From Hyalangium minutum (GTDB lineage Bacteria > Myxococcota > Myxococcia > Myxococcales > Myxococcaceae): 64,000 bases of DNA. Both the position numbers and the translations under genes were made by a program. Of the stretch, positions 1,231 through 21,142 are shown piece by piece. Numbering within the stretch: position 1 is the stretch's first letter; every line of letters begins with the position of its first letter. The stretch is from positions 186,001-250,000 of the forward strand of contig NZ_JMCB01000009.1 in the NCBI RefSeq assembly GCF_000737315.1, in the 5' to 3' direction. Below the pieces are notes generated by a model, which was given only the letters and a program-made list of their open reading frames with translations, searched no databases and was not told the origin of the DNA.

Positions 1231-1321
1231 GACGGGAGAGCCTCACTCCACGACCCATGGGGCCATCACCCTGGTATAGGCAGGCCTGAAGTCCTCCGGC
1301 CAACCCCCGGCAAAGACCCCC

Positions 1322-4300
1322 ATGATGGGCGCCTCTCAGCGCCAAGAAGGAAGACGGGTGAAGAAACGATCGGCTCCCCGGCCATCGGCGGCATCGGCCC
1401 AGCGAAGCAGGACGGAAGCCATGCTTTACCCGGAGCGTTTTCCGCTGGTGGGCATCGGCGCCTCGGCGGGCGGATTGCCCGCCTTCCTCTCCCTGCTCAA
1501 GCACCTGCCCACGCAGACGGGCATGGCCTTCGTGATCGTGCAGCACCTGGCCCCGGCCCGCGAGAGCATCCTCGCTGGATTGCTGGCCAAGGCCACGGCC
1601 ATGCCTGTCCTGGAGGCCACCGATGGCCTCGATCTCGAACCCAACCACGTCTACGTCAGTCCTCCGGGCGTGGGCATCACCTTCGCCCAGGGGGCCTTGC
1701 GCCTGAAGGCGCGCCGGGCTCCTGGGCAGCGCAGGCATCTCATCGATAACTTCCTGACCTCCCTGGCACAGGCCTCTCCGGGCCGGGCCATCGGCGTCAT
1801 CCTCTCTGGAACGGGCACGGATGGTACCCAGGGGCTCCAAGCCATCCACGCGGCGGGCGGCACCACCCTGGTCCAGGAGCCAGCCTCCGCCGACTTCGAT
1901 GGCATGCCCTGGAGCGCCATCGCCGCGGGCTGTGTGGATCACGTCCTGCCACCCGAGGGCATCGCGGAGGTCCTCGCCCAGCTCGCGAACGTCACGGCCC
2001 CCTCCCCTGGGTCCTCGGCCTCTGCCACGGCCTCTCCCTTGCTGATGCCCCAGGAAGAGCTGGGGCAGATCTTCCAGCTGCTGCGGAGCACGGCCAGAGT
2101 GGACTTCACCCACTACAAGCCCACCACCATCCATCGGCGCCTGGAGCGGCGCATGAGCCTGTGCAGGGTAGGACAGCTCGGCGACTACGTGCGCTACCTG
2201 CGGGAGCACCCGGAGGAGCTCGAGCTGCTTCACCAGGATCTGCTCATCCACGTCACCGCCTTCTTCCGGGACCCCGCCACCTTCGAGGTGCTCCAGCAGA
2301 AGATCTTCCCTCAGCTCTTCGAGAACCGGCCCCAGGAGCTCCCCTTCCGCATCTGGGTCCCTGGATGCTCCACCGGCGAGGAAGCCTACTCCCTCGTCAT
2401 CTCGCTGCTGGAGTTCCTGGGGCCGGCCGCCGCGCCTCCGCCCGTGCAGGTGTTCGCGACGGATCTCAGTGAGGCCGCCATCGAGCAGGCCCGCACCGCC
2501 ATCTACCCCGCGTCCATCGCCTCGAGTGTCTCGCCCGAGCGCCTGCACCGCTTCTTCGTGCAGACCGACGGCGGCTACCGGATCACCAAGGCCGTCCGGA
2601 GCCTGTGCATCTTCGCGCAGCAGAACCTGGTGAGCGATCCGCCCTTCTCCCAGGTCGACCTCATCAGCTGCCGCAATGTCCTCATCTACCTGGGGCCCGT
2701 GCTCCAGAAGAAGGTCATGCCCATCCTCCACTACGCCTTACGCCCCGGGGGGTTCCTGGTGCTCGGCTCCTCGGAGACGGTGGGCAGCTCCGCGGACCTG
2801 TTCTCCCTCGTGGACAAGCGCTGCAAGATCTACCGGAAGAAGAACGTCTCCCCCCGGCCGGGAGTCCTCTTCAGCTACCGCGACGCCCACGCGGAGAAGC
2901 CCATCCCCTCCCGGCGCAAGCACGAGCCCACGACCATGACCGAGGAGCTGCAGAGAGAGGCGAACCGCCTGGTCCTGGCCCGGTACGGACCTCCCGGCGT
3001 CATCGTCAACGGGGAGCTGGAGATCCTCCACTTCCGGGGCCACACCGGCCCGTACCTCGAGCTCATCCCAGGCGCCGCCAGCCTCAACCTCCTCAAGCTG
3101 GTGCGCGAGGGGTTGGCGTTGGATCTGCGCTCGGCCCTCCACGAGGCGAAGAAGAGCGCCCGTCGCGTCCGCAAGGAGGGGCTGGTCCTGCCCGCCGAAG
3201 GCACGCTGCGCAAGGTCAACCTCGAGGTGCACCCGCTGTCCTCCGTCACCGCCGGGCGTGAGCCGTACTTCCTCGTGCTCTTCGAGGAGGTCCAGGAGGT
3301 GGCTTCCACTCAGCCCCAGGAAGACCGGGCTTCCGCCCGCCGCGGCCGATCCAGCGCGGCCCAGAGTGAGCTCGAGCGGCTGCGCGAGGAGCTGCTCACG
3401 ACCCAGGAGCACCTGAAGACCGTCCTGGCGCAGCAGGAGGCCACCCACGAGGAGCTCCGCACGGCCACCGAGGAGACCCAGTCCAGCAACGAAGAGCTGC
3501 AGAGCACCAATGAGGAGCTGGAGACGGCCAAGGAAGAACTCCAGTCCACCAACGAGGAGCTGACCACCGTCAACGAGGAGTTGGAGAACAGCAACCTCGA
3601 GCTCAGCCAGCTGAACAGCGACCTGAACAACCTGATCGGCAGCACGCACATCGCCACCGTCATGGTGGACAACGAGCGGCGCATCCGCCGCTTCACGCCC
3701 ATGGCCGCCGCCGTGCTGCGGCTGTCCGCCACGGACATCGGGCGGCCCATCCGCGATGTGCAGGGCAGCCTCTCCCTGCCTGATCTGGAGGCCGCCCTCA
3801 CCGAAGTCATCGAGCGCCTGACCCTCGTCGAGCAAGAGGTGTGCGACCGCGACGGGCACTGGTACTCGCTGCGCCTGCGGCCCTACAAGACGCTGGACAA
3901 CCGGATCGACGGCGCCGTGGTGACACTGCTGGACATTGACCGGCTCAAGCGCAGCCTCGACGACGTGCGCAAGACCCGGGAGTACGCCAAGGCCATTGTG
4001 GAGACGATGCGCGAGCCCTTCTTGGTGCTGGACGCAGCCCTGCACGTGCTCAACGCCAACCCCGCCTTCTATTCCACCTTCCACATCAAGCAGGAGCAGA
4101 CCCTGGGGCGCCCGCTGTACGCGCTCGGCAATGGACAGTGGAACATCCCCCGGCTCCGACAACTCCTGGAGGAGATCCTCCCGCTCAACACCCACCTTCA
4201 GGACTTCGTGATGGAGCACGAGTTCTACACCATCGGGAAACGGCGGATGCTCCTCAACGCCCGCCGGATCTCCAGCGATGAGCTGGGAAGCCCTTACATC

Positions 4301-4354
4301 CTCCTCTCCATCGAGGACATAACAAACAAACAACAATTCGATAAAAACAGGTAA
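1322..4354 (+). CDS. CheB methylesterase / CheR methyltransferase / coiled-coil / PAS fusion
   Basis: CheB motifs GASAGG, VQHL, LSGTGTDG. CheR motifs VTAFFRDP, WVPGCSTGEE, ISCRNVLIY. NEELQSTNEEL coiled coil and two PAS-like domains. Exact start uncertain. Confidence 0.9.
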   Translation: MMGASQRQEGRRVKKRSAPRPSAASAQRSRTEAMLYPERFPLVGIGASAGGLPAFLSLLKHLPTQTGMAFVIVQHLAPARESILAGLLAKATAMPVLEATDGLDLEPNHVYVSPPGVGITFAQGALRLKARRAPGQRRHLIDNFLTSLAQASPGRAIGVILSGTGTDGTQGLQAIHAAGGTTLVQEPASADFDGMPWSAIAAGCVDHVLPPEGIAEVLAQLANVTAPSPGSSASATASPLLMPQEELGQIFQLLRSTARVDFTHYKPTTIHRRLERRMSLCRVGQLGDYVRYLREHPEELELLHQDLLIHVTAFFRDPATFEVLQQKIFPQLFENRPQELPFRIWVPGCSTGEEAYSLVISLLEFLGPAAAPPPVQVFATDLSEAAIEQARTAIYPASIASSVSPERLHRFFVQTDGGYRITKAVRSLCIFAQQNLVSDPPFSQVDLISCRNVLIYLGPVLQKKVMPILHYALRPGGFLVLGSSETVGSSADLFSLVDKRCKIYRKKNVSPRPGVLFSYRDAHAEKPIPSRRKHEPTTMTEELQREANRLVLARYGPPGVIVNGELEILHFRGHTGPYLELIPGAASLNLLKLVREGLALDLRSALHEAKKSARRVRKEGLVLPAEGTLRKVNLEVHPLSSVTAGREPYFLVLFEEVQEVASTQPQEDRASARRGRSSAAQSELERLREELLTTQEHLKTVLAQQEATHEELRTATEETQSSNEELQSTNEELETAKEELQSTNEELTTVNEELENSNLELSQLNSDLNNLIGSTHIATVMVDNERRIRRFTPMAAAVLRLSATDIGRPIRDVQGSLSLPDLEAALTEVIERLTLVEQEVCDRDGHWYSLRLRPYKTLDNRIDGAVVTLLDIDRLKRSLDDVRKTREYAKAIVETMREPFLVLDAALHVLNANPAFYSTFHIKQEQTLGRPLYALGNGQWNIPRLRQLLEEILPLNTHLQDFVMEHEFYTIGKRRMLLNARRISSDELGSPYILLSIEDITNKQQFDKNR

Positions 4355-4418
4355 ATCAGACTAGCCTGGAGAAGGGGCGCGTGACTAAGCTCCCCTCTCT
4401 GTGTGTGTGGGGGGGGTA

Positions 4419-6125
4419 ATGGGTAACCAGCGGAGCATGTCGCGCGCGGAAGTGGAGCAGGCTGTGCACTCGCTCGAGTGCAATCCCACCGCGCCGGATG
4501 AGCTGAAGCACCTGCTGCGGGAGCTGCAGCGCCACCAGCTGGAACTCGAACTGCAGAACCGCGAACTCCAGGAGGCGCACCAAGCGCTGGAGGAGTCGCG
4601 CAACCGCTACATGGAGCTCTACGACTTCGCGCCCATGGCCTGCGTGAGCCTGAATGAGCGCGCGTGCATCCAGGATCTCAACCTGACGGGCGCGGCCCTG
4701 CTGCGCCAGGATCGCACCTTTCTCCAAGGCCTGCCCTTCACCCCTTTCGTGGATCCCCAGGACGTGAGCCGCTTCCTGCTGCACGTGCGCCAGTGCATCG
4801 CGGGCGAGACGTTGAGCACGGAGCTGCGGCTGCGCGTCGCCAGGAGCCAGTTCGAGGTCCGGCTCTACAGCGCCCCGCTCCAGGACGGGAGGCCGCACGA
4901 GCGCATGTGCCGCACGGCCATCATCGACATCACCGAGCTGCGGCAGGTGCAGCTGCGCCTGAGCCTCGCCGAGCGCCTGGCCACAGTGGGCACGATCGCG
5001 GCGGGCATTGCCCACGAGATCAACAACCCCCTGGCCTTCCTCATGGGGAACCTCACGCTCGCCACGCTCACGTTGCAGTCCCAGGCCCCCGAGGCTGAGG
5101 TGTCACGGCCGCCAGGCGCCCTGGAGGGACGTCCCCCCGCGGAGCGGGCCCTCAAGGCGTTGGCTGAGGCCCAGACGGGCGCCGAGCGCATCCGGGACAT
5201 CGTGAAGGATCTGGGCGCCTTCGCCCGCCCCACCGCCTCGAGGAAGGGGCGCGTTGACGTTCAGCAGGTGCTGGAGCTGTCGGTGAAGATGGCCATGGCC
5301 GAGATCCGCCACCGCGCCACGCTCGTGCGGGACTACGCCAAGGCTCCGGAGATCACCGCCGATTCCGCCCAGCTGGGGCAGGTCTTCCTCAACCTGTTGG
5401 TGAACGCGGCGCAAGCCATCCCGGAAGGCGCGGCTTCCCTTCACGAGATCCGCCTGCGCGTGCGCACCGAGGAGGACACGGTCCTTGTGCAGGTCGAGGA
5501 CACGGGCGAAGGCATCTCCGCCCAAATCCTCGATCGCGTCTTCGACACCTTCTTCACCACCAAGGCGCCGAGCCATAGCATGGGGCTCGGGCTCGCCATC
5601 AGCCACAGCCTGGTGTCGCAGATGGGAGGGACCCTCACTGTGGAGAGCAAGCTGGGCCGGGGAAGCACCTTCTCCGTCCGGTTCCCCGCTGCGGCGCCCC
5701 CACCGGCGCTCACGAGAGAACGAGCTTCTCACCCGGCGCCCCCATCCGCTCTCCAGGGGGGGCGGATCCTCATCGTGGATGACGAGCCGAAGTTCGGCGA
5801 GACCTTGCAAATGCTCCTGAGCCTCTCTCACGAGGCCGTCTACACCTCCAGTGCACGCGAGGCCTTGCTCTGGATCCAGGAGGGCCACCACTACGACGCC
5901 ATCCTCTGCGATCTCATGATGGCGGAGGTGACCGGCCGGCAGTTCTATGAAGAGCTCTGCCAGCTTGCGCCGGAGATGGCCCGCCGCGTCATCTTCATGA
6001 CGGGTGGAGCCTATACCCCCGCCTCCCAGGAATTCGTCTCCGGGATGACACGCCCTTTGCTCATCAAGCCGTTCAAGGCCGATGCGCTCGATCAGGCGCT
6101 GCGGCCCCTCCTGCCGTCGGTTTAG
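4419..6125 (+). CDS. PAS hybrid histidine kinase with C-terminal receiver
   Basis: H-box GIAHEINNPL, N-box QVFLNLLVNA, G1/F/G2 boxes DTGEG, FFTTK, GLGL; receiver RILIVDDE...KPF. ATG at 4419 preferred over GTG at 4401. Confidence 0.9.
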   Translation: MGNQRSMSRAEVEQAVHSLECNPTAPDELKHLLRELQRHQLELELQNRELQEAHQALEESRNRYMELYDFAPMACVSLNERACIQDLNLTGAALLRQDRTFLQGLPFTPFVDPQDVSRFLLHVRQCIAGETLSTELRLRVARSQFEVRLYSAPLQDGRPHERMCRTAIIDITELRQVQLRLSLAERLATVGTIAAGIAHEINNPLAFLMGNLTLATLTLQSQAPEAEVSRPPGALEGRPPAERALKALAEAQTGAERIRDIVKDLGAFARPTASRKGRVDVQQVLELSVKMAMAEIRHRATLVRDYAKAPEITADSAQLGQVFLNLLVNAAQAIPEGAASLHEIRLRVRTEEDTVLVQVEDTGEGISAQILDRVFDTFFTTKAPSHSMGLGLAISHSLVSQMGGTLTVESKLGRGSTFSVRFPAAAPPPALTRERASHPAPPSALQGGRILIVDDEPKFGETLQMLLSLSHEAVYTSSAREALLWIQEGHHYDAILCDLMMAEVTGRQFYEELCQLAPEMARRVIFMTGGAYTPASQEFVSGMTRPLLIKPFKADALDQALRPLLPSV

Positions 6126-6202
6126 TTGAAGGGAGGCCGTAACTCGTCAATCCTCCGTTGCGCAGGCCCGCCTCACTCCCCCTCGACCTCTGGAGGTCGC
6201 TC

Positions 6203-7450
6203 ATGGCCAAGCGCATCCTTGGAATGATCCTGGCCGGTGGCCAGGGAACCCGGCTCGCCCCCTTGACGTCGCGGCGCTCCAAGCCCGCGGTGCCGTTCGG
6301 CTCGAAGTTCCGCATCATCGACTTCGCGCTGAACAACTTCATCAACTCGGGCATCTATTCGATCTACGTGCTGACGCAGTTCAAGGCGCAGTCGCTCACC
6401 GAGCACATCCAGCGAGGCTGGCGCTTCGGCACGTTCCTGTCGGACTACTTCATCACGCTGGTACCGGCGCAGATGTACCGCTTCGAGGAGCTGGGGCCCG
6501 TCTGGTACCGCGGCACGGCGGACGCCATCTACCAGAACCTGCACCTGGTGGAGAACCACGGGGCGGACCACGTGGCCATCTTCTCCGGCGACCACATCTA
6601 CAAGATGAACGTGGCGCACATGCAGGAGGCGCACGAGTCCCAGCGCGCGGACATCACCATCGCCGCCTACCCGGTACCGGTGGCCGAGGCGAGCCGCTTC
6701 GGCATCATGCAGGTGGACGAGCGCGGCCGCGTCACGGACTTCCAGGAGAAGCCCAAGGAGGGCGCGAAGACGATCCCGGGCCGGCCGGACATGGTGCTGG
6801 CCAGCATGGGCAACTACATCTTCCGGCGGCAGGTGCTGCAGGACCTGCTCGAGCTGGATGCGCGCGAGGAGGGCTCGCAGCACGACTTCGGCAAGAACAT
6901 CCTCCCGCGGGCGCTGAAGGACGGGTACCACATCCAGACGTATGACTTCACGCGCAACCCCATCCCGGGGCGGGATGCGCCGAACACGTACTGGCGCGAC
7001 GTGGGGACGCTGCAGGCGTACCACGAGGCCTCGATGGACCTGGTCTCGGTGAACCCGGAGTTCGACCTGTACAACCCGCACTGGCCGCTGCGCACGGCGA
7101 ACGAGTACAGCCCGCCAGCGAAGTTCGTCCACGAGGCCGGGGATCGGGTGGGCCGGGCGCTCAACTCGCTGATTGCCGGCGGCTGCATCATCTCCGGCGG
7201 CGTGGTGCGCGAGAGCATCCTCTTCCGGTGGGTGCGCGTGAACTCGTACTCGGAAGTGTACCGCTCGGTGATCTTCGACGAGGTGGACATCGGCCGCCAC
7301 GCCCAGATCAAGAACGCCATCATCGACAAGGGTGTGCGCGTGCCGCCGAACACGAAGATCGGCCATGACCTGGAGCAGGACAAGGCGCGCGGCTTCACGG
7401 TGACGGACAACGGCATCGTCGTGGTGCCCAAGGGCTACAAGTTCGGCTGA
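6203..7450 (+). CDS. glgC: Glucose-1-phosphate adenylyltransferase
   Basis: [50 protein letters not shown]; GGAGG RBS before ATG 6203. Confidence 0.95.
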
Positions 7451-10683: not shown

Positions 10684-12486
10684 TCAGACGATGCGGAACA
10701 CCCGCCCTGTGGGCACGAAGGGCAGGTGCCGCCCCTGCGGCAGCAGGAAGGCGTGCTCGCGCCGGAGCTGAAGCCGGTCGCACTCTCCATCCGTGATGAT
10801 GAGGATGGGCCCCTGTTTCGGGAAGTCCTCGGCTCGCTCCAAGAGATCGATCCCTGGCTGGAGGACCGTGCCACCTCGGCCGCGCACCCGCACCCGCTCG
10901 GCGATGGCCTCGGGTGCGACATAGCCTTCGTCGTACGCCACTGCGTCACAGAAGACGAGCCGCACCCGGGACACGTCCCGCGCCAAGCTGTAGCTCGCGA
11001 TGGCCCCGAGCGCCTTGGCCAGCAGCTTGCGGTCCATGGAGCCTGACGTGTCCAGCACCACCCCGAAGGTTCTCCCCTCCTGGGATTCCTCCCGAGGCAC
11101 CCACAGCGGCCGAGGAATGTCAGGGGTGGCCGACTGGCGCCGGCTGAGCCGTGTGTACGTCCGCCGCTTCTCCAGCGGGGAGAAGTGCGCGTCGAACCAC
11201 TGCGCCAACTCCACGTCCCATGGAATGGGCGGCTGATCCAGTGCGCGGATCTCCTCCACCAGGCCCGCAGGCAGGAAGCCCCGGCCCTCGGACTGGTGGT
11301 ACGCGAGTCCCTGCGACAAGCAGCGCCGGTAGAAGGCATCGAGCGTCATGCCATCGCCGTGCAGCCACCACTCGGGAGTGGTCCCGTCCAGCATGTCCCC
11401 GAGCCCGTAGCCGCGCAGCGTGGCCAGCTTCCGGTAGCGGCGCACGTCCGTGACAATCCGATCGTAGATGGCCTCCGCAGACAGCCCCTTGAGCTCGGGA
11501 TCGTAGAGGACGCCGAAGCTCGGCAGCTCGCCGACGCCCATCTCCACCAGCCAGCCGTTCACCACGTAGTCGCAGGCGACGTTCCACAGATAGGGATCCC
11601 GCCCCTGGCGGCGTGACTGGTGACGCAGGCCCACGTGAAGCAGTTCGTGCGCGATGACGAAGCGAGCGCTGCCCTCGTACAGCCCGGCCGAGGGGTTCAC
11701 GTAGATCTCCCGCGCCTCCTCGTCCACCGCCGCCACGGTGATCTGCATCCGCTGACAGACCAGCGGATCCTCCACCAGAGTGAAGTGCGCCGCGAGCGAG
11801 CCGAGCAGGGGGAACCGGGAGATGAACCACGAGCGCGCCCGCGAGGCCTCCGTGTGCACGCGCTCGCGCGGACTCATGGACTGCCGCAGCCCCGCAGCCA
11901 GCTCCACCGCCGAGTCCACCGCCTGCACGAGCCCCTGGGCCAGCAGCTTCTCCCAGTCCTGCTCCTGGCGGGTACTGGCCATTCCCACATCGACCATGTC
12001 GTAAGAGTTCGGGCCCGCCGCCCCGCAGCCCGCCAGCTTGGGAGGAATGCCGTCGCGAACGAAGCTCTCGTACAACCGCTCCTCGCTCTTGGAGCCGAAG
12101 TCCAGCTCCACCAGCATGTCCTCCGGCGGACGTCCAAACTTCAGATCCTTCAGGAAGCGCGCCACGAAGCAGTCGCACGCCGTCTGCCAAGCCACGGGCT
12201 CGGGGACGAGCTTGAAGTGGCCCAGTCCCAGGTGCAGCAGGCAGTGGGCGATGACGTAGGCCCACTCCTCCACCGAGCCGCGCCGCTTGGGATGCGCGTA
12301 GAGGACTCCGCCCGGGCCCACCACCATCCACCCGTTGGGCGGATACGGCGTGCTCTCGCGCCGGTACACAGCCGCACGCCACATCAGCGGGCCGAAGATG
12401 GGGTGGGCGCGCACCGTGCCGACGGCCTGCTCGAAGGCCTCAGTGGCGGGATCTCCTCCGCGCTTCTTGTCCTCCTTACGCGCCAT
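10684..12486 (-). CDS. DUF2201-type metallopeptidase + vWA protein with duplicated peptidase module
   Basis: AHCLLH and AHELLH motifs, each followed by an ACD motif; MIDAS VLDTSGSM, GGT and ITDG; overlaps the upstream ATPase by 11 bp. Confidence 0.85.
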   Translation of the reverse strand: MARKEDKKRGGDPATEAFEQAVGTVRAHPIFGPLMWRAAVYRRESTPYPPNGWMVVGPGGVLYAHPKRRGSVEEWAYVIAHCLLHLGLGHFKLVPEPVAWQTACDCFVARFLKDLKFGRPPEDMLVELDFGSKSEERLYESFVRDGIPPKLAGCGAAGPNSYDMVDVGMASTRQEQDWEKLLAQGLVQAVDSAVELAAGLRQSMSPRERVHTEASRARSWFISRFPLLGSLAAHFTLVEDPLVCQRMQITVAAVDEEAREIYVNPSAGLYEGSARFVIAHELLHVGLRHQSRRQGRDPYLWNVACDYVVNGWLVEMGVGELPSFGVLYDPELKGLSAEAIYDRIVTDVRRYRKLATLRGYGLGDMLDGTTPEWWLHGDGMTLDAFYRRCLSQGLAYHQSEGRGFLPAGLVEEIRALDQPPIPWDVELAQWFDAHFSPLEKRRTYTRLSRRQSATPDIPRPLWVPREESQEGRTFGVVLDTSGSMDRKLLAKALGAIASYSLARDVSRVRLVFCDAVAYDEGYVAPEAIAERVRVRGRGGTVLQPGIDLLERAEDFPKQGPILIITDGECDRLQLRREHAFLLPQGRHLPFVPTGRVFRIV

Positions 12487-13537
12487 CCTTGCGCTCCACC
12501 AGCCGAGGCAGATCGCGCACGATCTCCAGCAGCAGCCAATCCGGCAGCCCCTCGCCGTCCTGCCGTGCCACCACCATCTGCGCCATCTCGAAGCTGATGG
12601 CCGCCAGGTTCTTGATCAGCGCCTTGGCCCGGTGCGCCAGCTCGCGGTGGTGCTCAGCGAGCGCCTCGCGCGTACGCGGCAGCTCCTTGATGAGCTGGGC
12701 CCGCAGCGACTGCGAGAGGAAGTAGAGGACATCCCGATCCTCGGGCGCGTGGGGCCAGCCCATCTCGCCCCGGAGGATGGCGTTGAGCCGATACTTGCTG
12801 CGCGCCTGCTTCACGAACGCCTTGAACTGCCCCGCGTGCACGGGCGAGAGGCACCCGTAAGCCAGCACCTCCAGCGTGGCGTCCGGCACGTCCCCGCCAT
12901 ACTCCTTGAGGGCGTCGCTGAGCATGTGCCACGAGCGCGGCGTGGAGAACGGCTCCTCGTGCTTGGGAGGATTGCTCCAGAGGTGGTCTGGCCGCAGGCG
13001 GATGTAGTCGAGCACCATCGGGTGGAGTTCGGCCTGATGCGCCCACTCCAGCCAGTCTTGGTGCGAGGCCTGGAGCTGCACGTGGATCATCCGGTTGATG
13101 AGCGCCGAGGACATGGGCTTGACGATCGCGCTGTCCTGCGCCCGGTTGCCCGCGCCGATGACGATGGAGCCCGGGGGCAGCTCGTACTCGCCGATGCGCC
13201 GCTCGTGGATGAGGCTGTAGAAGGCCTTCTGCACCTCGTGCGAGCAGGCGTTCAGCTCGTCCAGGAAGAGGCAGTAGGGCTCACTGCGGGCAATCATCGT
13301 GGGCGGGCAGAAGCGGCTCTTGCCGTCGACGATCTGCGGCACACCGATGAGGTCCTCGGGCGCGAGCTGGCTGCCCAGCAACGACACGCACGGCAGCCCC
13401 ACCTGCTTGGCGAACTGCTGGACGATGGAGGACTTGCCGATGCCCGGTGGCCCCCAGATGAACACCGGCCGGATGACTGCGACGTGGAGGAGATACTCGG
13501 CCAGCGACTTCTGGGTCAGCGTCTGGACAGCGTTCAC
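12476..13537 (-). CDS. MoxR/dynein-related AAA+ ATPase
   Basis: Walker A GPPGIGKS, Walker B LFLDE, AGNRAQD, SALINR; GTG start with AGGAG RBS. Confidence 0.9.
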   Translation of the reverse strand: MNAVQTLTQKSLAEYLLHVAVIRPVFIWGPPGIGKSSIVQQFAKQVGLPCVSLLGSQLAPEDLIGVPQIVDGKSRFCPPTMIARSEPYCLFLDELNACSHEVQKAFYSLIHERRIGEYELPPGSIVIGAGNRAQDSAIVKPMSSALINRMIHVQLQASHQDWLEWAHQAELHPMVLDYIRLRPDHLWSNPPKHEEPFSTPRSWHMLSDALKEYGGDVPDATLEVLAYGCLSPVHAGQFKAFVKQARSKYRLNAILRGEMGWPHAPEDRDVLYFLSQSLRAQLIKELPRTREALAEHHRELAHRAKALIKNLAAISFEMAQMVVARQDGEGLPDWLLLEIVRDLPRLVERKDGA

Positions 13538-13612
13538 TCGGGAGTGCTCCTGGTGCCGTGGGCTCCGGAGGCCCCATGACGACAGGAGTGCGGACTTCTG
13601 ACAATCCCCGGG

Positions 13613-13711
13613 TCAGACCTTCAGGCCCGACCGGAATCGCCTCAGCACCGGCCCCAGCTCGCTCCCGGCGTTCACCTTCCACATCAGCAGCTCGGGAGGA
13701 GGCCGCGTCAT
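13613..13711 (-). CDS. Putative 32-aa ORF coupled to the RT stop (MTRPPPELLMWKVNAGSELGPVLRRFRSGLKV)
   Basis: ATGA overlap with the RT stop codon (13711-13708); mostly G/C-ending codons. Could be a remnant or spurious. Confidence 0.35.
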   Translation of the reverse strand: MTRPPPELLMWKVNAGSELGPVLRRFRSGLKV

Positions 13712-15123
13712 TCGCCCAGCAGCTCCTTCACCTCGCGCTGCCAGCGCTCGCCCAGCTCCGGGTGCACCATCTTCACGTACGCTGCGTAGCCTCGCAGCCA
13801 GCCCGAGAAGTCCTTGCGGCCCCGCGACTGGGACTCCACGCCGTGCTTGCGGCAGTTGTTCAGGATCGCCTTGAACCGGCGGCGCTCCTCGCGAGGAATG
13901 GACACCTGCTCGTTCACCGTCAGGCCCGTCACCCTCTGGCGCGAGTTCTTGCGCATCACCCGCCGCTTCGGCGCGTTCTCCAGGAAGCCCTCCTGCTGGA
14001 GGATGGCGTTCACCCACCACAGGAAGCGCCCCAGCTTCTCGGGCGGCTTCTCGAAGGAGAAGGACAGGTCATCCGCGTAGCGCGTGTAAGTGGCACCCGC
14101 CTTCTTCGCCAACGCCGTGAGCCGAGCGTCCATGCGCCGGCACACCAGGTTTGCGATCGCCGGAGACGTGGGCGCTCCCTGCGGCAGTGCTCCCGGCCAC
14201 ACCACTGTCCCATCCGGCAGCTTCGGCCGGTGCGTGGAGAGCCCCGCCAGCGTGCGGGCCACCTCGTCACCGTAGCCGTGCGCCTGGAACAGACCCTTCA
14301 CGCGCCGGTAGTGCACCGTGGGGAAGAAGTCCTCCAGATCCACGCGCACCACCACCGTGGCGCCCGTGTGCGGCTCGGCGTTGCTCACCGTGGAGCGCCC
14401 CTTCACGAAGCCGTGCGCGGCGTCGTGCGTGGGCATCTGCTCCAGGATCTTCTCGAGGATGGCGCGCTGCACCTCCTTGAGCTTCGCCCGAGGCGCCGAG
14501 ATGCGGCGCACCCCGCCCGAGCGCTTGGGCACCTCGAACTCCACGTACCCCGAGCCCGCCTCCGTGCCCGGCCGCATCAGCGCGGCGAGCTCCTCCTCTT
14601 GCACGCCCACCAGCTCCGCCACATCCTTCCGGGTGGACAGCTTGGGCAGCTTGCCCTTCAAGGGAGGCTGCTTCTTGGGGCGCCCTCCCCAGCGCATGGG
14701 GAGACCGAAGTTCCAGCCCGTGGGGTTCCAGCCGCCGCGGGACTGGGGCGTCGGGTGGCGCGGCGGCTTGAAGCGACGGTCCGGCGGCGCCACATCCGCC
14801 AGCCCCAGCTTGTGCACCGCGGCCCGCGCCGCTCCCGCCACCTGCTTGTCAGGGTCCTTCACCAACCGGCGCAGCTGCGCCGAGGCCGTTGCCCGCGCGA
14901 AGAGCAGCGGGATCTGCTGCGTGCCCTGGTGCCGCTCGCGCGGGTCCACGCTGCGCAGCATGCGCCCCACCGGCGCCAGCCACTGGCGGCTCACGTAGAA
15001 GCGCGCCACCTCGTACTCGGCCAGATTCTGGTGCTGCTCCAGCAGCGCGGTGATGCGCTTGAAGTTCGCTTCAGGGTCCGCCATCAGGGGCTTCAGCTCG
15101 AGGAGGAGGCCCACCAGGTCCAT
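13708..15123 (-). CDS. Retron-type reverse transcriptase with N-terminal HEAT-like helical extension
   Basis: Region X NAEPH, DLEDFFP, LPQGAPTSP, YADD, region Y VTG (RVTGLTV). Start placed at ATG 15123 (alternative 15129) downstream of GGAG. The longer ORF from 15504 runs through the ncRNA. Confidence 0.92.
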   Translation of the reverse strand: MDLVGLLLELKPLMADPEANFKRITALLEQHQNLAEYEVARFYVSRQWLAPVGRMLRSVDPRERHQGTQQIPLLFARATASAQLRRLVKDPDKQVAGAARAAVHKLGLADVAPPDRRFKPPRHPTPQSRGGWNPTGWNFGLPMRWGGRPKKQPPLKGKLPKLSTRKDVAELVGVQEEELAALMRPGTEAGSGYVEFEVPKRSGGVRRISAPRAKLKEVQRAILEKILEQMPTHDAAHGFVKGRSTVSNAEPHTGATVVVRVDLEDFFPTVHYRRVKGLFQAHGYGDEVARTLAGLSTHRPKLPDGTVVWPGALPQGAPTSPAIANLVCRRMDARLTALAKKAGATYTRYADDLSFSFEKPPEKLGRFLWWVNAILQQEGFLENAPKRRVMRKNSRQRVTGLTVNEQVSIPREERRRFKAILNNCRKHGVESQSRGRKDFSGWLRGYAAYVKMVHPELGERWQREVKELLGE

Positions 15124-15167
15124 TCCCATGCTCTCCCGGGGCTGCGGCCCCGCGCGTCGAAACCACT

Positions 15168-15326
15168 GCGCTCCTGGGGCCGCCGCCACCTGCACGGCAG
15201 ATGCACGAGTGGTCAGGGAAGCCCGCAAGGCGGACCACGCGCTGCGTCGTTCTTCAATGGGTATCGCTGGCAGCCGCGACGTGACATCGCGGACGGAAGG
15301 CTGGCTGCACGCGACCCCAGGAGCAC
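15168..15326 (-). ncRNA. Retron msr-msd non-coding RNA
   Basis: Transcript 5' arm GUGCUCCUGGGGUCGC (15326-15311) pairs with 3' arm GCGGCCCCAGGAGCGC (15183-15168): 16 bp including 2 G-U pairs. First unpaired base is G15310. Internal hairpins CCGCGAUG-UCA-CGUCGCGG, GUGGUC...GACCAC and CAUCUGC-CGU-GCAGGUG. Lies 45 nt upstream of the RT start. Confidence 0.8.
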
Positions 15327-15364
15327 TGTTGACTCCAGCACATTCGATTCCCAGAGGGAAGCAT

Positions 15365-18241
15365 TCACCGGGTCGGGGGAGGCTCGCCCTCCTCATCGAG
15401 GAGTGCCAGGAAGGTGTCTCGCGTCCCCCCGGGTGCCTGGCGGATGAGGGCGTTGAACTGCTGGGCCCGCGCGCGGACCCGCGCTCCGTGGGCCTGCATG
15501 GCACCGAGAGCCTCGGGGACCATGGTGGGCCGGGCGAGCACCTCCAGGTTCTGCGCCAGCTCGCGGTGGCTGCGGGGTGCGGAGAGGCAGGCGCTCACGC
15601 CGGGCTGCGAGAGGCTGTAGCGGTAGCAGTCCACCGCCGTGGGGAGCACGGCGTCCGCGGGCACCCCGGGCGCGGGCTGGAGCAACCGGCCATAGCAGGT
15701 GGCCGTGAAGGTGAGGACTCCAGTTCCCCGCGCGAGCGCCTCGGGGAAGAAGGAGGACTCCGCGCCTCGGTATGCGGCGCTGTGGCGCGTCATCACCACG
15801 GGCCAGGGGCGGCTCCGGATCGCTTCCGTGGCCACGTCTCGCAGGTGGGTGGAGAAGCCGAAGGCGCGGAGCTTGCCCTCGGCGCGGAGCTTCTCCAGGG
15901 CCTCGAAGTCCTCGTCATTGAGGCGCTCAGGCGAGCGCACCCAGAAGAGGAGAAAGACGTCCAGCCAGCTCGTGCGCAGCTGGCGCAGCGCGGACTCCAC
16001 GTCCCGGCGGAGCGCCGCAGGGCCCGAGTGGTACGAGCCCGCGACCAGCACGAGTCCCTCCCGCTGGCTCCGGAGAGAGCGCAGGAAACGGGTGAGCTGG
16101 AGGTACTCTGTCTCCCAGAAGAAGGTGTTCACACCGGCCTCATGGGCCTCGGCCAGCGAGGCGGCGGACAGGCCGTTGGCGCCCGAGAGCACCAGCGGGG
16201 AGACGCGCAGCCCCGTGTTCCCGAGGAGGCGCAAGGAGGGCCGAGAGGGGCTCTCGGGAGGCGTGCGCTTCGTGGGGGTCTTGTCCCGGCGAGGCCGTGT
16301 GGGCCGGCGCTGCTCCAGGTCAGGGGCTGAGGAGAAGACCTCGTCCGGGAAGATGAGGGTCATCGCCTCGAGGTGGGCGACCACCCGCTGTGGCTCCGAG
16401 GTGTCTCGTAGCGCGGCGGCCAGGTGCTGGAAGGCGGTGGAGTCCGCACGGCGCAACAGCCAAGTGTAGGCGGAGGCGCGAAGATCGGGCTCCCGCGTAC
16501 GCATGGGGCCTCGCAGCAGGCCGGCCAAGAGCGCGTCGAGTGTCTCGCACGCCTCGAGCACGGCTGCGGCAGCGGCTCGAACCATCGGAGAGGAATCGAG
16601 CGACAGGCGAAGGAGCGCCTCCAGTTCTTCCCGTGCGCCCTCTGCGTGAAGCAACTCTGCGCCACGGGCGCGCATCCACGGATCGGGGGAGCGCGCGCTG
16701 GCAAGGCCCACGCTGCGCAGTTCATTCGGTGAGAGGCTCACGCGGTGGGAGGCCAGGAGCGCGAGTGCCGATCGCCGTACCGAGAGGTCCGGATCGGACT
16801 CACATGCCTCTCGCGCCGAGGTCACGTCCAGCACAGCCGTGCGGATCCAGGGGTCCTCGTGCGAGAGGGCGTCGCGGCGTTCCTCCTCCGTGAGGGTTCC
16901 CTGCTCCGAACGCTCCCCGAGGGCCACTGCACGAACCGACACATCGGCATCGGTCGAGAGGCGCGCGAGCAAGGCCTCGTCGCCGACGCACCCGGCGGCC
17001 CCCGCAACGGCGCGGCGCTCGTGCGGAGTACAGGCCTGGGGAGCGAAGGCCACGAGGGCCCGCGCGAAGGCCAGAATGGCCGAGGGCGCAGGAGGCCGCT
17101 GCTCCCAGGCAGCGATGACCTCGTCACGCACGGACGCGTCCGGGTCACTGAGCGCAGCGAGCACCACTTCGCGGCTTGCGGGATCGTGTACGAGACCGGA
17201 GAGAGCTGCGCGCCGGACGGCGGGCTCCGCATGCCGGGCCAGGGCTTGGACCTGCTGGATGAGCTCGGGGTGATCCCTGCGCACCGCGATGCGGGCGGCC
17301 CAAGCGACCGCGCCCGGCCTTGGAGGTTCACCGAGGATACGCGAGGCCAGGGCGAGTTCATCCAGGTCGATCCGCTGAAGCAGAGAGCGAACCTCATCGG
17401 CGGAGTGAGGAACGCGCGGCTCATCCAGCCAGCGCATCACGAGCCTGACAGCCTCGGGATCCCGGAGTTCGATCAGACGCCGCCGCGCGAGGGAACGGAG
17501 CGGCTCGTGCGGATCTCCCAACCACTCCACCAGCTTGATGAGCGGCACCTCTGAGGCAGAGAGCCGCTCAAGCCGGGCTGTGACCACGGCGGGATCCTGG
17601 TCGTCCAGTCCCGCCTCGGCAGGTACCGGGAGAGGCCCCGCGAAGCTGCCCTCCTGAGGTGACGGAGCGGAAGAAGTCCAAGCGCCTTCGAGATACGCGG
17701 CGGCCGCCCGGACTGAACCGGGCCCTGCTGCATCACCTACGGCGCGCACACGTTGGCGGACCTCCGCGTGGGTCTCTCCCAGCCAGAGCAGCGCCTGCAC
17801 GGCCGCGCTTCGCACCCGCCAGAAGGGATCCTCTAAAGTTTGGATGAGCAATTCGAGCGCGCCGGTGCCTGCGACGGAGGCAGCAGCTCTGACGGCGGCC
17901 CGCCGCACCCACCAGACCGGCTCCTCACGGACGGCCTGTTCCGCCTGAGGAAGCAGTTCCCGCGTCCCCATTCGGGCCAGGGCGCGCCACACGCGATCGC
18001 GAACCATGGGAAGAGGGTCGCGCAGCGCCTCAATGAGCGCGCGGGCAAAGAGGCGATCCCGCGCCTCGCCGAGCCGCCGTGCGGCGGAGGCCCGGACCTC
18101 GGCGTCCTCATCCCCCAACAGGGCCTGCCTGAGCGCGTAGCGGCCCGTGAGCGTCGTGGCATCCACGGCGTCCACAGCCTCGCGGCGCACCTCAGCGGAC
18201 TCATCGAACAGCCGCACTGCGGCCGGGTTCAAAGGCGTCAT
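15365..18241 (-). CDS. HEAT/ARM-repeat protein fused to a C-terminal aldo-keto reductase-like domain
   Basis: Many L.DP...VR..AA.AL repeats over the first ~660 aa; AKR-like N-terminal motif LGNTGLRVSPLVL at ~16.24 kb, plus SALRQLRTSWLDVF and KLRAFGFSTH. Confidence 0.85.
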   Translation of the reverse strand: MTPLNPAAVRLFDESAEVRREAVDAVDATTLTGRYALRQALLGDEDAEVRASAARRLGEARDRLFARALIEALRDPLPMVRDRVWRALARMGTRELLPQAEQAVREEPVWWVRRAAVRAAASVAGTGALELLIQTLEDPFWRVRSAAVQALLWLGETHAEVRQRVRAVGDAAGPGSVRAAAAYLEGAWTSSAPSPQEGSFAGPLPVPAEAGLDDQDPAVVTARLERLSASEVPLIKLVEWLGDPHEPLRSLARRRLIELRDPEAVRLVMRWLDEPRVPHSADEVRSLLQRIDLDELALASRILGEPPRPGAVAWAARIAVRRDHPELIQQVQALARHAEPAVRRAALSGLVHDPASREVVLAALSDPDASVRDEVIAAWEQRPPAPSAILAFARALVAFAPQACTPHERRAVAGAAGCVGDEALLARLSTDADVSVRAVALGERSEQGTLTEEERRDALSHEDPWIRTAVLDVTSAREACESDPDLSVRRSALALLASHRVSLSPNELRSVGLASARSPDPWMRARGAELLHAEGAREELEALLRLSLDSSPMVRAAAAAVLEACETLDALLAGLLRGPMRTREPDLRASAYTWLLRRADSTAFQHLAAALRDTSEPQRVVAHLEAMTLIFPDEVFSSAPDLEQRRPTRPRRDKTPTKRTPPESPSRPSLRLLGNTGLRVSPLVLSGANGLSAASLAEAHEAGVNTFFWETEYLQLTRFLRSLRSQREGLVLVAGSYHSGPAALRRDVESALRQLRTSWLDVFLLFWVRSPERLNDEDFEALEKLRAEGKLRAFGFSTHLRDVATEAIRSRPWPVVMTRHSAAYRGAESSFFPEALARGTGVLTFTATCYGRLLQPAPGVPADAVLPTAVDCYRYSLSQPGVSACLSAPRSHRELAQNLEVLARPTMVPEALGAMQAHGARVRARAQQFNALIRQAPGGTRDTFLALLDEEGEPPPTR

Positions 18242-18260
18242 GCCCCTCAGACTCTACGCG

Positions 18261-18292
18261 CCTTGGTAGAATCGCGCCCATGCCTGACATGC
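18261..18292 (+). repeat. Direct repeat copy 1 (extended -10 TGgTAGAAT + ATGCCTGACATGC)
   Basis: CCTTGGTAGAATCGCGCCCATGCCTGACATGC; 31/32 identical to 20470-20501. Confidence 0.9.
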
Positions 18293-19641
18293 GGGCGTTG
18301 CAGGGGAAGATGCGCTGGGTGCTCTCGCACCGGTTGGGGCCTCTGGCGCTGGCCCTGCTGGTGGGATGCAGCAGTTCCACGCGGATCCTGCGCCTGGAGG
18401 CGGAGCAGCCCGAGCCCATCGTCCACATTGCTCCCGGAGACCGAGCGCCCGTGCGAGTGGACAGCGCGGCCTTCCTGGAAGCCTTCTCCACGCATGCCTT
18501 GCAGGTGCAGCCTGCCCCACAACCGCTCCAGCAAGCGCAGCGCTTGTGGCTGCTCCCCTCTCGAAGCGCTCCCTACGCCACTGCGCGCAGCCGCCTGGGC
18601 CTCGTCTCCGTGAATACTCAAGAGGACATGCCTCGGGGTCACCTGCTTCCAGAGACCTCTGCAGCGGAGGGCTCCATTTCGCGTGATTATGGCCTGTGGT
18701 GCGAGAGCCGCTCCCTGCCTCTGGACTGCCTTCAGCTACTGGACGGGGGAGCACTGCTGAGCCATGACGGCAAACGCGCCCTGGCCCTGCACTTCGCCCT
18801 GACCTCCCTCTGGCTGGAGACGAAAGACGCGCTGGAGCAGATGGTGGACCCGTTGGCGATTCAGACCACCCTCGTCTCCGCCATGACGATGTACCTCATG
18901 CTCTGGGTTCTTCCCGAGCCTCTCTCCAAGGGCATCGCTGCGGCCATGACCGTGGCCCTTATTGGCTACCTGGGCTTCGACACTGTCTGGAGCCTGTTCC
19001 AAGGGTGGGCCCTGCTGGTCGAGGACGTGGACAAGGCCACCTCCTTCGACCAGGTACGGGATGCCGGACGCCGGTTCAGCAGAGTGCTGGGGCCCAACGC
19101 CGCCCGTGTCTTCGCCATGCTCTTCACTGTCGCCGCAGGCAACACGGCGGCCGGCTTTGCCTCCAAGCTGCCCTCCCTACCCGGCGCGCCTCAGGCAACC
19201 CTGGCAGTTGCAATCCCTGGAGGTACCCCTCTCTCCCTCGCGGCCGCGGTGGACTCCGTCACCGTCTCCGCCTCAGGCGCCACCCTCGTCCTGGCACCTG
19301 GCGCCGTGGCCATGGCCAGCTCGGGCGACACGACCGTCTACATCTCGAGAAACGGAGGACAACTCCAATACGTAGGCATCACGAACGACCTTGCACGGCG
19401 CGCAGCGGAGCAACTCCGCGAGAAGGGAATCCACATTGAAGACCTGATGAATAATCTCTCAAGAGAGGATGCTCGTGCCGTCGAACAAGTCCTCATCGAG
19501 ATCCATGGTCTTCAGAAGAATGGCGGTACTCTTCTGAACCGCATCAACAGCATTGCTCGCTCAAACCCCAAGTACGCCCGCGCGCTGCGTCGAGGCAAAG
19601 AACTCCTCAAGACCCTCAAGAATGGGGACCAATTGGAATGA
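18280..19641 (+). CDS. SitA5-like polymorphic toxin lipoprotein with GIY-YIG/URI-type nuclease tip
   Basis: Lipobox LLVGC; conserved myxobacterial body (YGLWCE, DCLQLL, PEPLSKG, GFDTVW, APGAVAM); AT-richer tip VYIS...YVGITNDLARR...EQVLI. True start may be ATG 18310. Confidence 0.75.
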   Translation: MPDMRALQGKMRWVLSHRLGPLALALLVGCSSSTRILRLEAEQPEPIVHIAPGDRAPVRVDSAAFLEAFSTHALQVQPAPQPLQQAQRLWLLPSRSAPYATARSRLGLVSVNTQEDMPRGHLLPETSAAEGSISRDYGLWCESRSLPLDCLQLLDGGALLSHDGKRALALHFALTSLWLETKDALEQMVDPLAIQTTLVSAMTMYLMLWVLPEPLSKGIAAAMTVALIGYLGFDTVWSLFQGWALLVEDVDKATSFDQVRDAGRRFSRVLGPNAARVFAMLFTVAAGNTAAGFASKLPSLPGAPQATLAVAIPGGTPLSLAAAVDSVTVSASGATLVLAPGAVAMASSGDTTVYISRNGGQLQYVGITNDLARRAAEQLREKGIHIEDLMNNLSREDARAVEQVLIEIHGLQKNGGTLLNRINSIARSNPKYARALRRGKELLKTLKNGDQLE

Positions 19642-20456
19642 CCGGCTCGCGCAAAAAAGCGAAGTTCGGAGACATCGCCGAAGTTCGCACGCCTCGAGGG
19701 CTCGCCTATGTGCAGTACACCTCCAAGCATCCGAGATACAGCGATACCATCCGTGTGCTTCCTGGGCTTTTCAAGATACGCCCTTCTAACGACGAACTCG
19801 CTGCGCTCGCAACCCAAGAAGGGTACTTCGTCTTCTATCTTGTGAGCCTCGCCGTCAAACATGGGCTTGTGGAGATCATCGGTCATTACCCGATCCCCGT
19901 AGGGCTCGATGCTCCAGCCAAGCTGCTGAGAGTCGGCTTCATCGCGCCCGGGGGAAAAGTCATGACCTGGGTTCTTCTCGAAGGCGCTAAGGAGACTCTC
20001 ATCAAGAGAGAGCTCTCTCCCGAGGAGAAACGCCTCTCTCGCGCTTCTATGTGGAACCACGAGTATCTGGTGCAGCGCCTGGCAGAGCAGTGGCGGCCTG
20101 AACATGAGCATGAGCCACGCCCGCCCGCTCCCGTGACCAGCACGCCGCCGGAACCTTCGGGACAAGCGGAAGCGCCCCCCACCGCGTCCTCCGCCACCAC
20201 TCCGCTGCGCATGAGCCACTACCTCTACTTCCCTCTCACCAAGGACGGTAAAGCCGTCGCTGCAGAACTGCGTCGCCGTGGCTTCGAAATCGAGAGCCGC
20301 AAAGGCGCCGATGGTGTGAACTGGCTCGTCCTCGTCCACCACACCCTCTCCTCCTCCGAGGATGAGGCCGCGCTCACCGTCCGCGACGAACTGGAGCGCC
20401 TCGCCCAGCAACACTCCGGCGAGTATGACGGCTCGGAGACCGCGCTCCCGGAGTGA
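19638..20456 (+). CDS. Cognate immunity protein (Imm26-like N-terminus + RraB-like C-terminal domain)
   Basis: ATGA overlap with the toxin stop; N-terminal GDIAEV...YVQY pattern; Pro-rich linker; C-terminal HYLYFP...GEYDGSET. Confidence 0.6.
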   Translation: MTGSRKKAKFGDIAEVRTPRGLAYVQYTSKHPRYSDTIRVLPGLFKIRPSNDELAALATQEGYFVFYLVSLAVKHGLVEIIGHYPIPVGLDAPAKLLRVGFIAPGGKVMTWVLLEGAKETLIKRELSPEEKRLSRASMWNHEYLVQRLAEQWRPEHEHEPRPPAPVTSTPPEPSGQAEAPPTASSATTPLRMSHYLYFPLTKDGKAVAAELRRRGFEIESRKGADGVNWLVLVHHTLSSSEDEAALTVRDELERLAQQHSGEYDGSETALPE

Positions 20457-20469
20457 ATGTGGCAGCGCC

Positions 20470-20501
20470 CCTTGGTAGAATCCCGCCCATGCCTGACATG
20501 C
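20470..20501 (+). repeat. Direct repeat copy 2
   Basis: CCTTGGTAGAATCCCGCCCATGCCTGACATGC; one mismatch versus 18261-18292. Confidence 0.9.
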
Positions 20502-21142
20502 TGGCCATCATCAGCAAGGCGGTCTTCGAGAAGGAGGCTGCCGGCCTCAAGCCTGGGGACGTCCTTCCCCTCGACCGGTACCGCAGCGCGAGCCGCCACC
20601 TCGATCCCTTGAAGTCCGGCGGCCGCCTCTTCCTCGTCACCGTGCGCCCTCCGAAGGAGGCGCTCTGGTGGGTGGCCGTCCTCGAAGGCCTCAAGTTCCA
20701 GGACGAAGAGTGGCGCGCTACGCCCAACCGCATCCCCATCACCGACATCACCCGCCTCATCCCAAAGCTCCGCTTCGAGTCCGGCAAAGGCATCACCGCC
20801 GCCAAGGGCGCCCTGGGCATGTCTCTCCAGACGCCCCGCGTCCTCGCCGCTGAGGACCTCGCGCTGCTCCTGCCCTCCGGCAACAACGGCCCCGCCGAGG
20901 CCCCCGCCCCCGCAGGCCCCATCAACCTCACCGCCCACGAGCCGGACTCGCCCCTGCCTTGCCTGTGCAAGCGCTGCCTGCCCAAGGCCCCCGAGCGGGC
21001 CCAAGCCAAGGGTATGGCGTTCACCCGCGCCCACGTCGAAGCCGCGGACCGCGTCCTCCACTACTGGCTCCCCGATGAGCTGCTGCACGACGCCGCCCGC
21101 GTCTCCCAATCCGTGCTCGGAGCCCTGCACGCCCGGCTCTAA
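20489..21142 (+). CDS. Hypothetical protein with C-terminal CxCxxC motif
   Basis: Strong GC3 bias; starts MPDMLAIISK inside repeat copy 2; PCLCKRC motif. Confidence 0.7.
   Translation: MPDMLAIISKAVFEKEAAGLKPGDVLPLDRYRSASRHLDPLKSGGRLFLVTVRPPKEALWWVAVLEGLKFQDEEWRATPNRIPITDITRLIPKLRFESGKGITAAKGALGMSLQTPRVLAAEDLALLLPSGNNGPAEAPAPAGPINLTAHEPDSPLPCLCKRCLPKAPERAQAKGMAFTRAHVEAADRVLHYWLPDELLHDAARVSQSVLGALHARL

Follow-up and report, generated by a model that had tools for sequence, protein, structure and literature searches.

Within a 64-kilobase (kb) stretch of Hyalangium minutum DNA, hereafter the window, a toxin-immunity cassette of the SitA5/SitI kind lies just upstream of a conserved resident gene and is bracketed by two copies of that gene's promoter and start codon. 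The explanation that is favoured here, and which is very probably correct, is that a promoterless sitA5-sitI pair was inserted once in the resident gene, that about 71 nucleotides (nt) of the target were copied on both sides, and that cassette and gene are both expressed.

The bracketing sequence is the 32-nt CCTTGGTAGAATCNCGCCCATGCCTGACATGC, which has two matches in the window, at 18261-18292 and at 20470-20501. The copies agree at 31 of the 32 positions, the single mismatch being G18274 against C20483, and no chance match to the repeat was obtained in 100 dinucleotide-preserving shuffles. Ungapped extension carries the two copies to 18257-18296 (copy A, the upstream one of the two target copies, now acting as promoter and start of sitA5) and 20466-20505 (copy B, the downstream copy with the promoter and start of the resident gene), both read on the plus strand, with an identity of 37/40 and a longest shared perfect run of 18 nt. 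Within copy A an extended -10-like element, TGGTAGAAT, occupies 18264-18272 of the plus strand and is followed by a 7-nt spacer (18273-18279) and the ATG at 18280. The same geometry, which is the one expected of a leaderless transcript, recurs 2209 nt downstream, where TGGTAGAAT at 20473-20481 (plus strand) again stands 7 nt before an ATG, that at 20489; both elements are recognised by their sequence and its conservation, and a promoter function is presumed on those grounds. The coding part inside the repeat amounts to 13 nt, or 17 nt if one mismatch is allowed. Copy A runs on from the native intergenic sequence ACTCTACGCGCC that is known from empty sites in relatives, and the 9 nt that separate the sitI stop from copy B are unrelated to the native upstream sequence. 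A preliminary description of this DNA had already reported a cassette flanked by a repeat with 31/32 identity, the TG-g-TAGAAT placed 7 nt before ATG with 13 coding nt behind it, and the intact resident gene that is left when one repeat and the interior are dropped, all of which agree with the present analysis; deletion of the interior and one repeat in silico yields the gene arrangement of the empty-site relatives.

Between the two copies there are only two genes, which overlap and lie on the plus strand at 18280-19641 and 19638-20456. The first of these is sitA5, encoding a 453-amino-acid polymorphic lipoprotein toxin that matches NCBIfam NF050093 (SitA5_escort) at 2.5e-86 with 289 bits against a curated cutoff of 160, the escort domain covering about residues 23-291. 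Its translation begins with the signal peptide MPDMRALQGKMRWVLSHRLGPLALALLVGC (18280-18369, plus strand), in which inspection of the pattern finds the lipobox LLVGC with Cys30. The C-terminal part of about 100 amino acids is 54-72% identical to the tips of RHS toxins, PF01541 is present in some of the homologues, and the Pfam GIY-YIG model gives a weak match to the window's own tip (E=0.007) that falls under Pfam's cutoff. The RHS tips that resemble this region (19320-19641) are annotated from the unrelated phyla to which Desulforamulus, Hyphomicrobium, Bacteroidia and Planctomycetota belong (P0210-P0235). The second gene, sitI (19638-20456, plus strand), starts within the stop of sitA5 by an ATGA overlap at 19638-19641, and encodes a protein of 272 amino acids with a C-terminal RraB-like domain (Pfam RraB, 8.2e-08). 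All loci with this type of toxin (L001, L026-L031, L091, L092) have a homologous RraB-domain gene behind sitA5, and it is by its position that sitI is judged to be a putative immunity gene. A Pfam search with the N-terminal half of SitI gave no match, and nothing significant came up when the toxin tip and SitI were searched by sequence against the PDB.

The interior had been taken for a toxin-immunity cassette in the preliminary description, a view that the NF050093 match and the RraB-domain gene behind it would support. SitA5 toxins are lipoproteins that are passed on by TraAB outer-membrane exchange, they carry modular nuclease tips, and their escort domain relies on ExbB1 for entry (PMC5562445; PMC8546572), with stand-alone sitAI cassettes numbering 25-80 per myxobacterial genome (PMC8546572). 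The toxin tip has a G+C content of 54% and sitI one of 61.5%, compared with 70-71% in both flanking genes and 67% in the window, and this lower G+C together with a toxin tip common to RHS toxins points to a foreign origin of the cassette.

The gene that begins in copy B (20489-21142, plus strand) is intact and was identified by homology as encoding a conserved hypothetical protein of 217 amino acids starting MPDMLAIISKAVFEK. It has 540 homologues across Myxococcota and no family match in Pfam or NCBIfam. Most of the best 120 homologues start MPDM or MPDV, the remainder of those 120 being mostly gene calls that open at the fourth codon, and the MPDM start is not native to SitA5 at other loci. 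As MPDM is native to the resident protein and foreign to SitA5 elsewhere, it follows that the promoter and start belong to the resident gene and have been copied.

Relatives that lack the cassette show what the site looked like without it. A scan with one genome per species gave 25 loci with an ortholog of the resident gene, from two myxobacterial families, and 24 of these genomes are free of the cassette. In 23 of the 24 there is one copy of the motif, and the start of the divergent gene to the left, which encodes a HEAT-repeat/aldo-keto-reductase protein (HEAT-AKR), lies 36-40 nt from the resident ATG; in the other, L002, no cassette is present and the frame of HEAT-AKR is shifted, hence no distance can be given. 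At L002 (5100-7962) the HEAT-AKR ortholog appears as two overlapping matches in different frames (residues 1-205 and 202-955), through either a frameshift or an assembly error in a metagenome-assembled genome. The empty-site sequence is approximately that of the left flank of the window's copy A joined to the right flank of copy B. In the window HEAT-AKR starts 38 nt before ATG 18280 and, as had been measured earlier, 19 nt before the 32-nt repeat, and its ortholog adjoins the resident gene in all related loci. The site is empty in Hyalangium rubrum (L093) too. It had been suggested that relatives be searched for empty sites, and that the cassette had integrated at the 5' end of the resident gene and captured its promoter; the empty sites found, along with the native MPDM, support that suggestion.

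In the same scan the site was occupied in L001, a Hyalangium sp. metagenome-assembled genome, and further loci occupied at the same position, L026, L029, L031, L032, L091 and L092, were reached via homologues of SitA5 or of the resident protein. A neighbour-joining tree of HEAT-AKR (958 amino acids) covers the six occupied loci with a full-length HEAT-AKR, which leaves out L091 and L092, and it places the window, L001, L026, L029, L031 and L032 in one clade whose sister is formed by the empty L003 and L006. As the occupied sites make up one clade, the simplest reading would be a single insertion that is old rather than recent and was then inherited by the whole clade. Among the occupied lineages identity goes down to 79-87% for HEAT-AKR and to 63-79% for SitA5/SitI. 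At L027 (GCA_034680565.1, 4950-7530) SitA5 starts MPYMLAVIR behind the native promoter, other genes replace the HEAT-AKR side, and the resident gene survives as a piece of its promoter joined to the 12 final codons (SKPVLGALLARL and the stop). This locus was considered as a cassette that had moved to a new place together with the resident promoter, and the idea was rejected, as the last 12 resident codons persist downstream and the locus is the same one in a decayed state.

Whilst the duplication itself is real, the 32 bp given for it in the preliminary description do not represent its original length. At L031 copy A is a duplication of 71 nt with 91.5% identity, from about -24 to +47, and includes 16 resident codons; these do not share the frame of sitA5, whose start at this locus is a GTG of its own behind a Shine-Dalgarno-like GAGG. 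In that contig (JGI 3300031825, 4943-5010) the duplicated start opens an out-of-frame upstream open reading frame, beginning MPDMLATIREAVFEKDEVPC, that runs into sitA5, and the arrangement may be the ancestral state that preceded the in-frame fusion. At L001 the repeat is 55-60 nt long, and MPDMLTIISKATF, encoded by the resident codons, continues in the same frame into PLPCRLLSLGLVALLVGC; no ATG of that frame lies between the resident codons and the lipobox. The N-termini of SitA5 at this one locus form a series, MPDMLTIISKATF, MPHMLAVICRAIF, MPDMLARLGK (L029) and MPDTRVLLGK (L026), to which the window adds MPDMRALQGK.

The first 13 or so SitA5 codons in the window evidently derive from MPDMLAIISKAVF of the resident gene, and from this comparison the duplicated codons appear to have turned into the charged stretch with which the SitA5 signal peptide begins. 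The original duplication was, to judge from L031, about 71 nt long, and the 32-40 nt seen in the window are evidently a remnant kept under selection, consisting of TGnTAGAAT, the 7-nt spacer, the ATG and four codons. As relatives keep longer duplications, the 13-17 coding nt in the window mark where similarity has decayed and not an insertion junction. On its left the duplication ends at about -24, just 5' of the TG of the -10 element, and no -35 region has been copied.

The copied element seems to be held under constraint. All 33 copies of the B or empty-site type and 8/8 A copies, from two families, contain a TAnnnT hexamer at -12 to -14 (at -14 in one of the 33) that in most cases follows a TG, and no Shine-Dalgarno sequence is seen in the A, B and empty-site copies examined. 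Over positions -22 to +5 the identity of copy A to copy B is 0.87 within genomes and 0.85-0.86 between genomes. Gene conversion was considered as the process that keeps the copies alike and is rejected, since identity is no higher within genomes than between them, and it is therefore purifying selection or functional constraint that holds them alike; a CTTGG variant common to both copies in the window and to copy B of L026 is too weak to count in favour of conversion. Together these data favour, short of proof, a role of both copies as extended -10 promoters from which leaderless transcripts start. Leaderless transcripts dependent on sigma-A have been proposed for myxobacteria (PMC12754779).

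No transposase, recombinase or integrase is found in or beside the cassette, whose interior holds only two open reading frames and has no room for another gene, just as the preliminary description had supposed of an integrase or transposase. Inverted repeats are absent from the cassette ends. The DNA homology of related cassettes at three loci (L031, L030, L035) extends from the signal-peptide region to the sitI stop only, and no conserved non-coding ends or common core were found across cassettes at different loci. As for an attC, the sitI stop at 20456 is only 9 nt from the duplicated target at 20466, and no attC model was run. The possibility had also been raised that the cassette excises through its repeats, which the data do not support. 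There is no sign of excision, 9/9 sampled occupied contigs (the window, L001, L026, L027, L029, L031, L032, L091 and L092) keeping the cassette, and recombination between the repeats, whilst formally possible, would have to work with perfect identity of at most 18 nt. Furthermore, a cell that lost immunity would be expected to die if its kin went on delivering the toxin, as would follow from PMC5562445.

The search for similar duplications at other sitA5 loci, which had been proposed beforehand, set the 650 nt that surround each sitA5 start against the same-strand DNA 1.3-6.5 kb downstream of it, with 262 windows from empty-site loci and the rest of the 64-kb window as background. Flanking direct repeats of 35-112 nt were found at 7/29 independent sitA5 loci and in 4/262 background windows (Fisher p=1.2e-5), and five of the 29 loci, compared with 0/262 background windows, have short target-derived repeats of at least 84% identity (p=7e-6). 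All four background matches are long paralog matches with no more than 79% identity. The minus-strand control gave only the hairpin of L083 below E=1e-3, plus two marginal matches at E of about 0.01. A 240-nt direct repeat with 79% identity, at about 1001-1240 and 5896-6135 of the window, was also seen in the background control and probably consists of paralogous gene segments.

At L030 (JGI 3300018432, 900-5100) a type I restriction-modification operon hosts the cassette between its hsdM and hsdS genes, with repeats of 112 nt (93%) and 89 nt (89%). The duplicated parts are the hsdM 3' end with the hsdS start, plus the hsdM promoter with 21 codons; the sitA5 GTG directly follows 12 nt of hsdS, and after the cassette a 54-codon mini-hsdM, made up of the promoter, the first 21 and the last 33 codons, restores the overlap of hsdM stop and hsdS start; the whole is equivalent to a duplication of about 1.8 kb. 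A possible resemblance of the left end of the L031 cassette to the hsdM start of L030 was considered, and may be due to chance in G+C-rich DNA. At L053 the repeat is 87 nt (84%) and comprises the 3' end of the upstream gene with intergenic DNA. The gene downstream is convergent, and as copy B faces it and has no obvious use there, it is suggested that the duplication stems from the insertion process itself. The L067 repeat (67 nt, 85%) holds the upstream region and putative start codon of the next open reading frame, and that of L060, at least 101 nt (93%) and bounded by the contig ends, holds the 3' end of the upstream gene. The 62-nt repeat of L041 (4438-4499 and 6475-6536) is cassette-derived and not target-derived, being the 3' end of sitI itself, and the fragment just upstream of sitA5 suggests a former tandem array or a cassette replacement. 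The 35-nt repeat of L083 is a hairpin that matches the minus strand as well and is ambiguous. That the repeats are variable in length and specific to their locus argues against a transposase or an att core, and fits either an illegitimate capture coupled to duplication or the single-crossover entry of a circle that carries the target.

Of the possible histories, the one held very probable would run as follows. In the ancestor of a Hyalangium-like clade a promoterless sitA5-sitI operon would have entered about 47 nt inside the resident gene, leaving both flanks with some 71 nt of the target, which would span about -24 to +47 and hold the extended -10, the start codon and the first 16 codons. 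The upstream copy would then transcribe sitA5-sitI, probably as a leaderless mRNA, its promoter activity and the leaderless translation being presumed, and in most lineages, the window included, the resident codons would have been joined to the sitA5 reading frame and reshaped into the charged N-terminal part of the SitA5 signal peptide. With its own promoter in the downstream copy, the resident gene would stay intact. The event itself would be an illegitimate, duplication-coupled capture of DNA that needs no dedicated recombinase and could proceed where a tandem duplication is joined, through end joining or through template switching. A cassette can be tolerated in the 5' end of a gene only where that end is regenerated, and a promoterless cassette needs a promoter upstream to be useful. 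Selection would favour those insertions that acquire a promoter and yet leave the target gene functional, and probably adds to the pattern.

A Campbell-type entry, in which a circle carrying sitA5-sitI and about 70 nt of the resident 5' region integrates by a single homologous crossover, predicts exactly the structure observed, a homologous segment on both flanks. It would suit L030 especially well, where the mini-hsdM would have come ready-made with its promoter and 21 codons joined to the last 100 nt or so and the hsdS start, and a circle excised from an occupied strain could in principle re-enter a naive one. It is nevertheless considered unlikely, as the first joining of cassette and target fragment is left unexplained, 70 nt is a very short substrate, the phylogeny at this site has a single origin with no sign of repeated re-entry, and the segments duplicated at L053 and L060 are 3' ends of genes with no obvious use. 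Direct repeats and a restored 5' end also bring to mind integrative elements that restore the ends of tRNA genes, and the repeat could then be the attL/attR core of a non-autonomous element served by an integrase elsewhere. As neither the cassette nor the DNA next to it encodes an integrase, the repeat follows the sitI stop after only 9-10 nt, and the flanking repeats are target-derived and differ from locus to locus in sequence and length (35-112 nt up to the equivalent of a whole gene) with no common core, site-specific integration has very little to commend it. Long variable target duplications are made by insertion sequences of the IS1634/IS1549 group, and a transposase acting in trans might produce flanking duplications that are long and variable in the same way; such transposition is a slim chance, as there are no terminal inverted repeats, no conserved non-coding ends at three loci and no transposase nearby, and the duplication at L030 is equivalent to about 1.8 kb. 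The idea that nothing was inserted, and that two look-alike promoters arose independently under a common regulator or as a common promoter type, can appeal to the constraint on both copies and to the likeness of the motif to a generic extended -10. It is effectively refuted, as the identity runs through the start codon into coding sequence, in relatives the duplication still measures 55-71 nt and places as many as 16 resident codons ahead of sitA5, empty sites exist, and the motif occurs nowhere else in the 64-kb window.

There are several points that count against a single promoter-duplicating insertion followed by inheritance. A two-hexamer promoter scan of 18100-20700 finds no promoter, a scan which is uninformative for an extended -10 without a -35, and the promoter call therefore depends on the extended -10 motif and its conservation and not on a -35/-10 pair. 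The window also has an in-frame ATG at 18310 with GGGGAAG before it, which is a possible alternative start of sitA5. No flanking repeat is present at 22/29 sitA5 loci, which may be explained by age or another route of entry, and the number of independent loci presupposes that each metagenome contig stands for a site of its own. Finally, the monophyly of the occupied sites depends on the HEAT-AKR tree, which has no bootstrap support, and the occupied clade is left unresolved in the tree of the short resident gene.

Several known systems share features with this locus. Integron cassettes are likewise promoterless open reading frames that depend on the promoter of their landing site; here, in contrast, there is no attC, integrase or fixed attI, and the promoter is that of an ordinary gene and was duplicated by the event. 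The orphan modules of Rhs/CDI arrays are toxin-immunity units flanked by short repeated pieces of neighbouring genes and are built up via recombination, their repeats coming from the conserved part of the toxin gene itself, whereas the repeats here come from an unrelated resident gene and only L041 resembles the orphan type. Tandem duplications with DNA captured at the junction, through end joining or template switching, leave variable lengths of target duplicated on both sides and need no element machinery; as far as is known, no bacterial toxin-immunity cassette has been reported to acquire its promoter in this way. The closer comparison is with published sitAI (SitA5 family) cassettes, which have the same escort domain and lipoprotein signal peptide, an immunity gene directly downstream in the operon, and a modular nuclease-type tip at the C-terminus to which the tip here may correspond, and are likewise acquired horizontally (PMC5562445; PMC8546572). 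Such loci are often carried on prophages or other mobile elements (PMC5562445; PMC8546572), unlike the bare gene pair here, which has no mobile element and is bracketed by the duplicated promoter and start of its target. How stand-alone sitAI cassettes enter the chromosome is not described in PMC5562445 or PMC8546572, and a full-text literature search for sitAI together with direct repeats returned nothing relevant. The kind of cassette is thus already known, and it is the duplication of promoter and start, the recycling of codons and the recurrent duplication signature that are undescribed in the literature searched.

SitA toxins define the kin groups of myxobacteria, whose genomes hold dozens of sitAI loci. 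The locus described here provides a complete natural series, from many empty sites through a near-original insertion (L031) to progressively remodelled descendants that include the window. The series would show a promoterless toxin operon gaining expression through a duplicated resident promoter and start of the leaderless type, the resident gene surviving through regeneration of its 5' end, and resident codons being recycled into a lipoprotein signal peptide. The signature of flanking duplications offers a practical marker of recent cassette gains and makes the mechanism of insertion testable in the laboratory. It may further be asked whether stand-alone sitAI cassettes spread by recurrent insertions that duplicate the target without a recombinase encoded by the element, a distinct mode of cassette mobility; this can be put forward only as a tentative and rather doubtful extension. 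A candidate process would be end-joining or template-switch capture at chromosome breaks, possibly cut by the nuclease toxins themselves. If true, bare promoterless toxin-immunity pairs would seize resident promoters, start codons and even codons for signal peptides, by way of variable duplications of tens to about 1,800 nt.

To the left of the cassette, and outside it, HEAT-AKR (15365-18241, minus strand) encodes a protein of 958 amino acids with matches to Pfam HEAT_2 (1e-30) and Aldo_ket_red (3.4e-07). It forms part of a minus-strand cluster at 10684-18241 with a VWA/DUF2201 metallopeptidase, a MoxR-type AAA ATPase and a reverse transcriptase (RVT_1, about 471 amino acids in relatives). This cluster is syntenic at occupied and empty sites alike (L026, L029, L031, L093), HEAT-AKR is conserved across two families, and the cluster looks like conserved chromosomal DNA and not a mobile island. 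As it is also present at empty sites, its closeness to the cassette, which the preliminary description had pointed out for a retron cluster, is no evidence of involvement. An origin of the cassette as a retro-copy, that is as a reverse-transcribed mRNA, was likewise considered and rejected, as the reverse transcriptase cluster occurs at empty sites too and the cassette ends 9-10 nt past the stop without a terminator or A-tail.

The 38-nt intergenic region between HEAT-AKR and ATG 18280 (18242-18279), which is also found in L002-L025 and L093, seems to carry a pair of -10 elements arranged back to back. One is the conserved GACTCTAC, which on the minus strand gives TAGAGT and is set about 9 nt away from the start codon of HEAT-AKR; the other is TGnTAGAAT, directed towards the resident gene, and the duplication has its left end between the pair. 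HEAT-AKR is itself split in L024 (Citreicoccus inhibens), where an insert of about 3.2 kb at 4157-7379 carries open reading frames of 649 amino acids on the plus strand and 413 amino acids on the minus strand.

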